DNA of 63,727 nucleotides, counting the filler, from Reticulomyxa filosa (lineage: Eukaryota > Protista > Foraminifera): assembly GCA_000512085.1 (NCBI GenBank). It is 24 parts of 24 records of this genome, joined end to end, with 100 filler letters (N's around TTAATTAATTAA, not from the genome) between each part and the next. Parts side by side here need not be neighbours in the genome. Positions count along the whole stretch, not along the records: positions 59,637 to 62,268 come from ASPP01012837.1; 23 more parts are not named here. One strand, written 5' to 3'. Positions 9,960-62,268 of the stretch are shown in pieces. Position 1 is the stretch's first letter; each line of letters begins with the position of its first letter. Both the position numbers and the translations under genes were made by a program. Below the pieces are notes generated by a model that made no database searches, had not been told where the DNA came from, and saw only the letters and a list, made by a program, of their open reading frames with translations.

Positions 9960-11240
9960 TTCCATACCCGATTGACCCATATTCCCCTGCCCACAACCTT
10001 GACCATCAAATGTATGCATTTGCGGATCAGTATATAAATCTCCAACTCCCTGAAGATCACAGATCAAAATTTTGTGTTCACTTGCCTCATAAGTGAAATG
10101 AGCAAAAGCCTGCGGTGTATTGCGACGCACTACATCATTGATCCAGTCCCAATTGTTTGTATATTTTTTGTAATCTCCTTCAATATATGGTTCTACTCCA
10201 CAACTGCAATGCATTTATCCCATTGTTTTTATTTTTATGTTTATCTTTTGTTTTTCATACAATTAAACGGGGGAAAAAAAAGATGACTCTAAAAAAAAAA
10301 AAAAAAAGAGTCAAGTTAACGAAACAACATAGAGGGTGTTCGATCAACCAATTCATAAACCCAGCAATCAAGGAAGCCAATTTTTTTAGGGACTCCCTTT
10401 TTGTTAAATTCCTCTGCAAAGCGCTGGGCATGTTTTTGCATAGCAACGTCCTGGAAATAGGACTTCCACTCTTCGCAAGGATCGATTGCGATTTTAGCGA
10501 CGTGAGTGGGGGTCACTGCAAAATTGGCGATTACGAGCCTGTTGAAGTAGTGGAGTCAATCATATAATACACGTACCGCAATGAGCCATGGTCGAAAGGA
10601 TTGGGGGATATTTGCACCGTTCGTGTTTCTTGAGTCCATACCTCTTTATTATCCACTATGCGGCAACTATGGCATATGGCTCGTTCTTTTGCCACCGTCT
10701 CCCATTTGGGGATTTCTTTTATTATCTCAATGTCTCCAAGAACTTTAACAAACATATATGTATATGTATACATATATATATATATATGTACATATATATG
10801 TACATGTATGTATATGTACAGCCATATGTTACATGCCATGTGTATACGTATGCATATACAATTATACGTATACACTCCAAAAAAAAAAAAAACATACCTC
10901 GTTTTTCATTTGGTTTACTAAAGTTGCGATGGACTTGATTTTTGGTAGATTGGTTGATCTTTGTCCCCGTGATATGGTCGACCAATTTCAGTTTTCTTTG
11001 CTCATATTCTTCTGTCGATATCATGTTCAATTGATACAATTGCTCCAAGTTTGACTCGTTCCAGAGCTCTTCCTCTCTTTCCCTGCTCTTGTCCATCACC
11101 TTGGCAGTGTATTTACTCGTCCATGTTTTCATTCGTTCTTTTTCATCCCTTTCTCCTTGCTTTTCGTTGTTGTTCCCAGATCTGGCTCCTTTTTTTTTCT
11201 CGGCACTCGAACGCTGTTGCAATGTCAATCTTTCCAAATT
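9960..11240 (-). CDS. Alpha-kinase (eEF2K/myosin heavy chain kinase family), partial, multi-exon
   Basis: FDHGSLRYVY, HVAK, VEPYIEGDYKKYTNN, PQAFAHFTYEASEHKILICDLQGVGDLYTDPQMH and GQGNMG. Confidence 0.92.
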
Positions 11241-57700: not shown

Positions 57701-59686
57701 AACTATTGTTGTTGCAATCGCACGAGCAACAATTCTTCAACAAAAAAAATTTAAAAAATAAAATTATAAACATTATCTCTTTTTCATTTTTTCTTTTTTT
57801 CCTCCTTTTTTTTTACTTTTTTTTTCATTTCATTTTTTTTTTCTTTTTTTTTCTTATTTCATATTTTCTTTTTTTTCTTTCTATTATTTTCTTTTTTATT
57901 ATCATCTTTTTTTTTCCCCCTTATTCATTTCCCCTTTTTTTTAATTTATTATTCTATTTTTTTTTTTTAATACATTTTTTAAACCCCCCTCCTTAAATTT
58001 TTTTTCTTCCCTACCACTTAAACTTTTTTCATACAGTGTACCTATATCTGTACAAAAGCACAAACAAATTTACATTATATATTTTTTTAAAAAACAAAAA
58101 AAGAAACGTTTAACTGCAACAAGTGGATCCATTCGAGTTCAGGTATTTTTTTTTTCCTATATAAACACTTAACAAATTTTTGGGGAGGGATTGGTAATAC
58201 AATAAATAAATAAAAATGTAAACATATATATATTTTTTTTCTTTGAAGGGGGAATTCCTATTACTAACACAAACACATCACATTATATAATAAAAGTATA
58301 TAAAAAAACTAAATACAAATATAAGCATACTTTTTTTGCTCCTTTCGGATGCGGGGTGGATTTCGACCCCATTTTCTTTTTCATTTTTTATTTTCTTATT
58401 TTTATTTTTTATTTTTATTTGTGTGTGTGTAGATAGGGACCGATGATACGATATTGCGGATGGGGGAACCTATGTACAAATCACAAAACATTTGTATATG
58501 TATGTATAAAAAAAAAAGAGATAAATAAGACAAACCTTTTTATATCCTTTTGGAGACGGGGTTGGTTCTACACCTTATTCTTCTTTTTTTTTCTAATCAC
58601 AGTTGGGGGGGGATTCTATTGTGACAAACACACAACATATAGTTACATATTGCACACACACAAAAAAAAGATTTTACCTTCTCTGGCGCACAATACTGCA
58701 ATCAAAATCTCGCATTATGTGGCCACAACGATAAGTGGTTGAATTCGATCATCATTTGCGGCTTCTCCAATTTATACAATTATTTGTGCCGCTTTGTTTA
58801 TATCTCCAAGCTCCACAAGTATACTATACACAAGTCAAAGTCAAGAGATAATGTCTATTATTGCAGAAACAAAAAAAAGAAAATGAAGATAACTTGGCAG
58901 CAGAACATAATCGACGTGGATTGGATATCAATGGAAGTGTTTGTAGACATTCGCAGTATTATTGATTTCGAATATGTAAGCATAATTGTCGTGTCGGAGC
59001 TGGAGCAATTTGTGAAGGCAATAGAATCAGTTGGTGCACACAGTCATGCGGATGTTGCATTGACGGCACAGATGCCACTGGACGCCACTTATTGGAGAAA
59101 TCAGTGTCTCTTTGCACAAAAAGAATATAAGCATCACGGCCGACTTGCAATAGAATTGCTCGTCAGTTGCGTTATGCTCATTTTCCTTATTTGAGCAAAT
59201 AGCGCTTCAATCTCCTTAAGGGCATGCCATTGGCAATCAGACAATGGGAACCGATTTTCATTTACGACTTGTAACAGCCATACGTTGGAACCGTCATCGC
59301 CGTCTGTAAATGACAATTTGCAACAATCACATTATTACGTATATCTTGATGATCTGTATGGTATATACAATTTTTTTTTTGTTTCCTTTTTTAAAAAAAA
59401 ATATATAAAAAAAAACAACTTAACATTGTAGAATTGGATAACATTTTCAACATAGCCGGTGAAGTTTTGCAAGTCAATGATAAGAACTGTGCAGCGATAC
59501 GTTGCAATGACAAATTTGCTGGGACGATATACAGTGNNNNNNNNNNNNNNNNNNNNNNNNNNNNNNNNNNNNNNNNNNNNTTAATTAATTAANNNNNNNN
59601 NNNNNNNNNNNNNNNNNNNNNNNNNNNNNNNNNNNNATACATATATATATATATATATATATATGTATATGTATATATAAGTGTAG

Positions 59687-61166
59687 AAAGAACAAGTAAT
59701 AACGAATGACAAGAAAGCGGACAACGATAGAGGATTAGAAAAAGAAGTGGAGAGAACAGAGATTGGAGAAACAAAGCCTGGGATAAACTTGCAGGGCTAT
59801 TGTGCAAACAATGGATGCCTGGCTTCGAAAGCAAAGCTGCCAGTGTGGGTGAATATCGGTTTTGACAAGATTGCATTTGTGTCAGGTAAGACGTGGTTCA
59901 TTTGTCCGGATTGCAAAAAGTCGACAGTGGAGTCAATAGTCAGGGCGGTGTTGTACAATTCCGAGCACTCGATTTCCGCCGTCGCGGACGATGTGATGTG
60001 TGTGACGGATAACAATTACCAATGCTCGTATGTCATTAAATCGGGACTGTCGTATGAGTTGAAGGCGAGTAAGATTCGACAGCATGCGCAGAGCATTGAG
60101 GATTTGAGAGAGCGAAGTGAGCAAGCAATGAATAGTATTGAAATGAGGAATTTGATGACCGAGTTGCAAAAGTATGAGATTACAGTGGTGAAGCCACCGA
60201 GTTTGAAAGGGAATGAGCGACTATTGGAAAAGATTCAATCCGATTATGGTGGTGATTTTAATCAGGTATTTGATATTGGACGATGTACTATTTTATGTGA
60301 CAATCCAACGAAATTACAAACGGCAGTTGCGGTAATGAAAAAGGCCGATCAATTCAATTTGATTGTGTCTGAAGACAAAGACTTTTTTGACAAAAAGTCA
60401 AAGACGCATCATCGATTTCACAATATCAAATTGTTTGTTCCAAAGCATGATGTTTATATTGAAATGCAAGCGACATTAAAGAATTTTACGACTTTGGACG
60501 GATATACGGTGATTGAAAATCCGAAATTGAGTCATTCATTCTATGAGATGATCCGAGCGTGGAAGCCCAAGGATCACATGGAAGAGGAATTGAAACAGGC
60601 AAGTGATGAGACATTGACAAAGATCAATGACATCATTTGCGAATGGATTGACGAAAGAGAGATTAAAAGAGTTGCCAATCGTTATAAAGCACACTCCGAA
60701 CTTGGGATATTGAAACCTCCGCAATTGCGAGAAGTGGATAAAGAGCATGTCAACTCCAAGCAGCAGCATGTTCCTTTGCAATTGACGGCGTTTGTGTATG
60801 ATCAACTCTGCACGTTTGACCCCGTCAAAATGAAAGGAAGAGCTGTGTATGTAGTCTTGTTGCAGTTCTTCAAAACACATATCATGGGCGATGCAAATCC
60901 AGCCAGCTGTGCAGATGTCGCATCGATTCTGAAACAGTCCAGATCGCAAGAATTGGAAGAGGATGAAGCAATGTCCCAAGCCCTTGAAACATATATTCCA
61001 TTACAAGCAAATCATTTCCCTTATGTGGATGGTGATGACCATTGTAATGCACAGCATGCCGCTTATGATTGTTATCAACATGTGATGGATTTGTTGGAAG
61101 AAAAAAAAGAAGAAGAAAAAAAAGAGAGGAAAAAAAGAAGAGGAAAAAAAGAAGAGGAAAAGAATC

Positions 61167-61206
<40 letters not shown>

Positions 61207-62268
61207 TGTAATAATATTACAAGGAAAATCAGGATCGGGAAAAAGCTTATTCTGTCGTCATTTGGAAGATACATTATGGAAAACATATGACAATAATTCA
61301 GCCAAGGCCATTCCTGTATACATTTCATTGCCCAAATGCTATGACAAATACGATGAACCACATATCATCCATCAAGCTTTGCAAATGAAACAAATCAACA
61401 AAGATATGATCGATACCATTCGTGAGCGCGCTTCATTTGTGTTTATTTTGGATGGTTTTGATGAAATATTTGACAGATATAATTCGAGTATTAATGCCAA
61501 TGTCAATGCCAATGCCAATGCTAATAAAGAAAGGCATTTTTATAAGCGCTTCCATTTACATGAATGGAATGCAAAAGTGATTATCACTTGTCGAAGTCAT
61601 GTACTAAACGACAACGATAACAATGACAACAATGACAACAATGACGGTAACAACAACAATGACGATAATATCAAACACATTATGATTGGATCAAACGAGA
61701 CGACGACGACGACGACGACGACGAAGACGACGCCGATGATATATTTGTGGCCCTTTTCAAAAGAGCAAATGCACGGATATATCGACAAATTTGTCAAAAT
61801 GAACAAAACAAACCAGTTCAATGCATATTCGGATTGGACGACGGAGCAATATGAGACGACGTTGCAAAGCTATCCCAGTCTGCACAAAATGGTGGAAGAG
61901 CCATTTTTACTTCGATTGATATTGACAGTATTGCCTTCACTCATAAAACAGCAGCAGCGACGAGGACGACGACGACGACAACGACGACGACATTTCACAC
62001 AAAATCAAATATCAAAAGTGCAAGTGTACGAAGCATTCCACGAGCAATGGATTGACATGCATGCGCAGAGTATCTGCAGCAAACTGGCCGAATTGCGAAT
62101 CCAAATCAATCCTGATAAAATCAAATGGACATTGGAAAAGTATTGCCAAGACTTGGGATTTGAAATGTTTGTGCAAGGCAACCAAGTGGCAACAGAGCAT
62201 TGTAAGCAATATGATACATTTCAAACTTTAAAAAAAGAAGAAGAAAAAGAAGAAGAAGAAGAAGAAGA
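59687..62268 (+). CDS. NLR-like family copy 4: Cys4 domain + RelA/SpoT-like nucleotidyltransferase + helical region + NACHT (both ends truncated)
   Basis: Exon starts after the TAG acceptor at 59686. [13 protein letters not shown]; LKGNERLLEKIQSDYGGDFNQVFDIGRCTI...HRFHNIKL...IEMQ...HSFYEMIR; GKSGSGKS, FVFILDGFDE, IITCR and EEPFLL. Confidence 0.92.

Follow-up and report, generated by a model that had tools for sequence, protein, structure and literature searches.

A Tas1-like RelA/SpoT-homologue domain joined to NACHT in a large NLR-like protein family of the foraminiferan Reticulomyxa filosa

A 63,727-nucleotide stretch of joined records from the Reticulomyxa filosa assembly GCA_000512085.1 (Foraminifera, Rhizaria), hereafter the window, includes a piece of ASPP01012837.1 (59637-62268; all coordinates are those of the joined stretch) in which a single open reading frame (ORF) encodes a RelA/SpoT-homologue (RSH) synthetase-fold domain followed by a NACHT NTPase. 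The solved enzyme that this domain most closely resembles is Tas1, a (p)ppApp synthetase toxin of the Pseudomonas aeruginosa type VI secretion system that is neutralised by an immunity protein. A large paralogous family of NOD-like receptor (NLR)-like STAND proteins is represented in the piece by one copy, truncated at either end; full-length members carry a WD40 propeller at the C-terminus. We are nearly certain of the domain order and the fold of the encoded protein, that is, of its architecture and of the RSH fold. Residues are numbered from the GTG at 59747, from which 840 codons run to the 3' edge of the piece, and the features are collected in Table 1.

Identification of the RSH domain

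A first-pass annotation, made from the sequence alone, had proposed a RelA/SpoT synthetase-fold effector ahead of NACHT, and this proposal was upheld by sequence profiles, the predicted fold, conservation among paralogues and purifying selection. When the window copy was scanned with Pfam, PF04607 (RelA_SpoT) matched residues 154-241 at 21.7-22.3 bits (E 1.6e-4 to 2.6e-4), for a gathering cut-off of 27 bits. One paralogue, P0001, passed that cut-off with 30.2 bits, and a PF04607 match at E <= 0.001 was obtained for 29 of the 43 aligned family members; an NCBIfam scan of the N-terminal 318 amino acids (aa) gave no match. Searched singly against the Protein Data Bank (PDB), the window sequence found Tas1 at E 0.033, aligned over the K-R-K-DY-GD-D-R stretch. 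A PDB match to Tic214 (E 0.0023) was rejected as compositional, being of low complexity and having no backing from the profile or fold search.

An exhaustive phmmer search of 1.8 billion representatives returned 126 matches. Those beyond the Reticulomyxa copies had E values of 7e-13 to 1e-3 and 25-40% identity, and all of them spanned aa 100-280. The distant relatives were bacterial and phage polymorphic-toxin domains in toxin-type contexts, among them P0112, where the domain is the C-terminal end of a VgrG spike, P0109, which one source annotates as a head protein of the SPP1 gp7 family, and proteins fused with InPase or ParB-like domains. When the family profile was run against solved structures, Tas1 (PDB 6OX6) was matched at E 7e-26 and the next chain at 1.5e-11; RelP, RelQ and long Rel/RelA were also matched, at E 1.5e-11 to 6e-5.

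AlphaFold2 (AF2), supplied with the family alignment, produced a model with a predicted local distance difference test score (pLDDT) of 84 and a predicted template modelling score (pTM) of 0.77. The fold comparison that had been proposed as a check was then given by Foldseek, which ranked Tas1 first among PDB entries for this model (E 1.3e-8, template modelling score (TM) 0.62/0.65). The matches listed under Tas1 were all RSH enzymes (small alarmone synthetases, CapRel, Rel and RelA), and by these listed matches the model contains the alpha/beta nucleotidyltransferase-type synthetase fold. Tas1 was thus the closest solved RSH enzyme both by profile and among the Foldseek matches listed. Because the Pfam, phmmer, family-profile and AF2/Foldseek lines agree, the N-terminal effector is predicted to have the RSH synthetase fold, an assignment that is secure although the window copy alone fails the Pfam cut-off.

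Active site and G-loop

The basic patch and the catalytic Asp stretch read SLKGNERLLEKIQSDYGGDFNQVFDIGRCTILC (60200-60298), and they were followed by KTHHRFHNIKL (60401-60433), YIEMQ (60455-60469) and HSFYEMIR (60533-60556). All of the motifs quoted in the first-pass annotation from about 60074 to 60556 were located in the sequence, in one frame and at the places given. The order it gave, from the basic patch through the catalytic Asp and the G-loop to ExQ, was likewise recovered, the basic patch, the catalytic Asp with its Arg and the ExQ all being present as expected in the window copy. The catalytic motif is the short D-x-x-R, as in Tas1, and not D-x-x-G-x-R. In the donor site of FaRel2, K66/S70/K74 bind the triphosphate, D90 holds a magnesium ion, and R95, E145 and Q147 contact adenine; the corresponding residues of the window copy are K154/R158/K162, D176, R179 and E239/Q241 (PMC11782079).

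An alignment, of the kind suggested earlier for the catalytic Asp and Glu, found D176 and E239 invariant. In this alignment, which is headed by the window protein and holds 36 diverse sequences, K154 was also invariant, and R158, K162, R179 and Q241 were each at least 90% conserved. Among 86 Reticulomyxa-type segments, 47 span all seven active-site positions, and 44 of these retain every donor and catalytic residue.

The GY of the G-loop is lacking in the window copy. As had been noticed from the sequence THHRFH, GY is replaced, and H222 stands at the position aligned with the stacking Tyr. Of 65 close paralogues, 51 have H at this position, 11 have Y, and one each has D, F and R; among 42 distant relatives, 32 have Y. 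The alignment register at the G-loop is uncertain because the model confidence there is the lowest within the core (pLDDT about 72), and a conserved Phe two residues past H222 could be the stacking residue instead. A His in place of the acceptor-stacking Tyr leaves the acceptor uncertain.

Selection on the RSH core

The window copy was compared in codon alignments with four paralogous loci and one environmental relative. The RSH core showed a nonsynonymous divergence of 0.044-0.13, whereas the values for the four-cysteine domain, the linker and NACHT lay at 0.17-0.30. Synonymous sites were saturated, with a proportion of differences (pS) of 0.65-0.99, indicating that the copies are old; since the ratio of nonsynonymous to synonymous rates (dN/dS) is unreliable under such saturation, only the nonsynonymous contrast between regions was used. 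By this contrast, the RSH core is the slowest-evolving and most constrained part of the protein and is under the strongest purifying selection, which argues against a decayed pseudoenzyme.

NACHT, WD40 and the four-cysteine module

The canonical NACHT reported for the same frame was confirmed: PF05729 matched aa 487-580 at 33.7 bits (cut-off 26.7, E 4e-8), and Walker A (GKSGSGKS, 61223-61246), Walker B (FVFILDGFDE, 61436-61465) and the VIITCRS strand (61577-61597) are all intact. The NACHT region is interrupted by in-frame microsatellite-coded runs at 61493-61525, 61607-61669 and 61695-61736. The WD40 sensor that had been expected was found in paralogues and not in the piece itself. Propellers are present in the full-length members P0012, P0014, P0015 and P0051, and at locus L004 one ATG-started ORF of 1244 codons holds the four-cysteine, RSH, NACHT and WD40 domains (the last at aa ~970-1240), indicating that effector, nucleotide-binding oligomerisation domain and sensor are joined without splicing. 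By comparison with paralogues, the WD40 repeats of the window copy would start about 130 codons past the contig edge.

Upstream of the RSH domain lies a four-cysteine beta-sandwich. The earlier domain reading, accurate for RSH and NACHT, had passed over this module as well as the missing start codon. The sandwich was modelled by AF2 at pLDDT 90, and its cysteines C19, C24, C53 and C56 probably form a Zn site. No family for it was found in the Pfam library used, Foldseek found no match in PDB (best E 0.14), and VIA-align returned generic cupin, jelly-roll and crystallin-like sandwiches with a best Z of 6.1, below the noise level of 7-8 stated for the tool. In the ESM Atlas, the same shape occurs in eukaryotic proteins (TM 0.65-0.74 over more than 100 residues); its fusion partners there are ubiquitin-like domains in proteins of sponges and Mucoromycota and an ADP-ribosyltransferase in those of rotifers. 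For one paralogue a PF27609 assignment is precomputed, an entry absent from the Pfam copy used. That the module is autoinhibitory or serves targeting is speculation.

The paralogue family

A first search of database proteins found 50 family members, and a later search with the family profile found 86, of which 84 are named Reticulomyxa filosa and come from contigs of the same assembly. The module of this family is found in at least 84 annotated R. filosa proteins or fragments. In NCBI and UniRef the R. filosa proteins are labelled hypothetical or 'NACHT domain-containing', and a few bear a precomputed PF04607 match. Environmental relatives from ENA (P0044) and JGI (P0053) share about 35-57% identity and keep the motifs. 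We rejected bacterial contamination and recent transfer as explanations, since R. filosa-type microsatellite runs lie in frame, the at least 84 paralogous fragments sit on R. filosa contigs, and longer contigs carry eukaryotic neighbours such as clathrin light chain.

Proposed mode of action and alternatives

The full-length protein would run from the four-cysteine beta-sandwich through the Tas1-like RSH pyrophosphokinase domain, the linker and NACHT to WD40. By analogy with fungal, animal and bacterial NLR and STAND proteins, the WD40 propeller would bind a ligand, and ligand binding would release NACHT for oligomerisation dependent on nucleoside triphosphate. Clustering or release of the RSH domain may then turn on pyrophosphate transfer, with ATP as the donor and a 3'-OH as the accepting group. 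The likeliest acceptor would be an adenine nucleotide, because Tas1 is the nearest characterised relative, and the reaction would, as with Tas1, yield (p)ppApp and rapidly deplete ATP. To our knowledge, Tas1 is alone among RSH toxins in killing by depletion of ATP. The output would be growth arrest or cell death, serving a syncytial amoeboid cell in defence or allorecognition. We think it reasonably probable that the domain is an active pyrophosphokinase effector under NACHT control. A bolder proposal is that Foraminifera independently built a large NLR repertoire with an active Tas1-type pyrophosphokinase effector, whose G-loop His confers a new acceptor specificity, and with the four-cysteine sandwich as inhibitor or targeting module; taken as a whole, this is tentative and rather unlikely. 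If true, a eukaryotic cell would be using bacterial alarmone-toxin chemistry for an innate-immune or self/non-self output.

Several points weigh against an active effector with an immune role. The window copy falls under the Pfam gathering threshold for RelA_SpoT (22 versus 27 bits). Its first in-frame ATG is codon 84, and the copy could be dead; there is also no WD40 repeat within the piece, where the frame leaves the edge at aa 840. No RNA sequencing run is listed for the stretch. The acceptor-stacking Tyr is His here and in most close paralogues (51/65), and a Y-to-F change at the acceptor-stacking site of FaRel2 already cripples that enzyme (PMC11782079). An enzyme assay exists for no member of the family, and none was found for fungal RelA_SpoT NLRs in the papers searched. 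Furthermore, an immune or allorecognition role is suggested purely by analogy.

If the domain is active, it might act as a tRNA 3'-CCA pyrophosphokinase that halts translation in the manner of FaRel2 and CapRel, and not as a (p)ppApp synthetase. CapRel (7ZTB) was among the Foldseek matches at E 2e-5, the toxic small alarmone synthetases (toxSAS) that act on tRNA share the donor site and likewise use an adenine acceptor (PMC11782079), and the altered G-loop (H222) permits a non-nucleotide acceptor. Nevertheless, we judge this activity unlikely: Tas1 was far closest in sequence (E 7e-26) while the profile search returned no CapRel or FaRel2 chain, the fold is closer to Tas1 (TM 0.62-0.65) than to CapRel (0.44-0.47), and the N-terminal basic tRNA-binding extension was not recognised. 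R. filosa feeds on bacteria, which counts towards another product, a (p)ppGpp-like signal that would be directed against intracellular or prey bacteria or used as a second messenger to a downstream effector, and would not kill by ATP depletion. Synthetases of the small alarmone type that make (p)ppGpp were next-best by both sequence and fold, and Dyrka et al. suggested that the fungal domains manipulate the signalling of prokaryotes (PMC4986451). With the guanine-stacking Tyr gone, however, and with secreted or packaged Tas1-type toxin domains, not housekeeping synthetases, as the nearest relatives, a signal of this kind appears very unlikely.

Alternatively, the RSH-like domain could be a pseudoenzyme, retained as a nucleotide-binding regulatory or adaptor module, and the window copy may, separately, be a pseudogene. 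Speaking for these readings are the sub-threshold Pfam score, the lost G-loop Tyr, the absent start codon, the in-frame microsatellites with which this copy is riddled and the lack of a listed RNA sequencing run. On the other side, the seven catalytic and donor residues are kept in 44/47 paralogues and also in relatives of 35-45% identity from other samples, and the RSH core evolves three to four times slower than the remaining protein; against long-standing decay, the frame of 860 codons is stop-free in an AT-rich genome. We regard loss of function in either form as improbable.

Comparison with known systems

RSH enzymes are well known from textbooks as stress and toxin enzymes of bacteria, and their occurrence as effectors of eukaryotic NLRs has been noted in fungi since 2014. 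Dyrka et al. 2014 (PMC4986451) placed RelA_SpoT among the N-terminal effectors of fungal NLRs and tabulated RELA_SPOT-NACHT-WD40 proteins of Gaeumannomyces graminis, and in a 2025 survey of Sordariales (PMC12258605) RelA_SpoT is treated as one of the canonical N-terminal domains of fungal NLRs. The first-pass annotation knew of no characterised eukaryotic NLR with an RSH effector; the architecture itself had already been listed in fungi, and the papers found give no activity for the fungal domains. In the literature searched, nothing relevant linked Reticulomyxa with NACHT or NLR.

Like the fungal RelA_SpoT NLRs, the R. filosa proteins have an RSH-fold effector N-terminal to NACHT and a C-terminal WD40, belong to a lineage-specific expanded repertoire, and are known from sequence only. 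Unlike them, they occur in Rhizaria, a different eukaryotic supergroup, they add the four-cysteine beta-sandwich and have His for the G-loop Tyr, and they are far more numerous (at least 84 annotated fragments versus, e.g., 17 in all Sordariales). The RSH domains of the two groups are likened here by described architecture. A full-length (840-aa) family profile, run on the top 8000 word-sharing candidates, retrieved R. filosa proteins and two environmental relatives only, and no fungal RelA_SpoT NLRs.

Tas1, the best match in sequence and fold, shares with the R. filosa domain the short D-x-x-R, the K/R/K donor patch, the ExQ and a helical lead-in. It differs in being a secreted bacterial toxin, whereas the R. 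filosa domain belongs to a eukaryote and is attached to a NACHT switch, and in keeping GY in its G-loop; identity between the two is only about 19%. The toxSAS enzymes FaRel, FaRel2 and CapRel have the same toxSYNTH/RSH fold, which in them is a switchable growth-arrest effector in immunity, and CapRel has a sensor and autoinhibitor fused to its catalytic domain. They are, however, small single-module bacterial proteins without a STAND NTPase, and they lie further than Tas1 in sequence and fold. HET-E/NWD proteins of Podospora and the bacterial NACHT/Avs STANDs resemble the R. filosa family in NACHT, a C-terminal repeat sensor, a swappable N-terminal effector and paralogue expansion; their effectors are HET, HeLo, nuclease, SIR2 and others, and they are allorecognition or defence proteins, whereas the foraminiferan family is known from sequence alone.

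The R. filosa family is thus a known architecture in a new lineage and not a new kind of system. Particular to it are the extra N-terminal domain, the G-loop His, an affinity of the Tas1 type and a very high number of copies. It differs usefully from the fungal proteins in being very large, strongly constrained in its catalytic core and closest to Tas1, and it offers an independent, abundant sequence set for inquiring into the products of RSH effectors in the cytoplasm of a eukaryote. The family is also relevant to the frequency with which eukaryotic NLR-like systems have recruited bacterial toxin domains.

Gene boundaries and further features

Two in-frame stops (59678-59686) directly follow the (TA)n microsatellite at the 5' edge, and from 59687 the ORF extends for about 860 codons to the 3' edge. 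Other ORFs in the piece were no longer than 159 aa, all of them over simple repeats. The '59747 ORF' of the first-pass annotation corresponds to an open frame there, but one that begins at GTG; the first in-frame ATG, at 59996 (codon 84), falls within a conserved domain. As there is no ATG before codon 84, the true start either lies on an upstream exon beyond the contig end or has been lost. In the paralogue P0014, an ATG stands 44 codons upstream of the conserved GINLQG motif, and at approximately the equivalent position the piece has the (TA)n microsatellite and the two stops. The contig edges, (TA)n at 5' and an (AAG)n run at 3', are typical breaks of a fragmented assembly.

Table 1. Features of the piece of ASPP01012837.1 in joined-stretch coordinates
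Feature	Residues	Position	Strand	Remark
(TA)n microsatellite		59637-59679	.	5' edge of piece
Single ORF		59687-62268	+	cut by 3' edge; no in-frame ATG upstream of 59996
Four-cysteine beta-sandwich	12-98	59780-60040	+	C19, C24, C53, C56 conserved
Two-helix lead-in to RSH core	101-145	60047-60181	+	present in Tas1-type relatives too
RSH synthetase-fold core (predicted), Tas1-like	146-275	60182-60571	+	
Donor-ATP basic residues	K154, R158, K162	60206, 60218, 60230	+	
Catalytic residues	D176, R179	60272, 60281	+	
G-loop His	H222	60410	+	in place of usual Tyr
ExQ motif	E239, Q241	60461, 60467	+	
Linker between RSH and NACHT	276-450	60572-61096	+	conserved among paralogues; no family match
In-frame simple repeats		61097-61206	+	Lys/Glu-rich run then 13 Gln, just before P-loop
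NACHT NTPase	487-726	61205-61924	+	
Post-NACHT helical region		61925-62268	+	Arg-rich run (61958-61991); ends in (AAG)n at contig edge

Runs of Lys/Glu, poly-Gln, Asn/Ala, Asn/Asp, poly-Thr and poly-Arg are encoded by the in-frame microsatellites of the piece, which sit between and within the NACHT motifs and leave the frame unbroken (61097-61206, the three runs inside NACHT given above, and 61958-61991).

Variant architectures among relatives

At L004, a separate 156-aa WD40 gene model (10357-10827) lies directly downstream of a 1368-aa paralogue; it probably belongs to the same gene, split by annotation or by a frame break. P0001 (RFI_08856, 1027 aa) apparently has two tandem N-terminal modules before one NACHT: it scored 970 bits for the 330-aa query region, with zinc-ribbon-like matches near aa 62-76 and 439-472 and RelA_SpoT at 548-636. 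Four further paralogues (P0009, P0029, P0031 and P0036) bear an extra N-terminal extension of about 40 residues that resembles a three-helix module of the UBA/CUE type and has no counterpart in the window copy.

Related domains also occur in other protists. P0120 (EukProt g2318.t1) has an NPHP3-type P-loop ahead of an RSH-like region, together with WD40 repeats; P0126 is a Guillardia theta protein with a Tas1-like RSH domain; and in P0159 (MMETSP) the RSH domain is fused with a ResIII helicase. In P0139, a 433-aa protein from a JGI metagenome, an RSH-like domain is fused to a NUDIX hydrolase domain, which could be a built-in product hydrolase.

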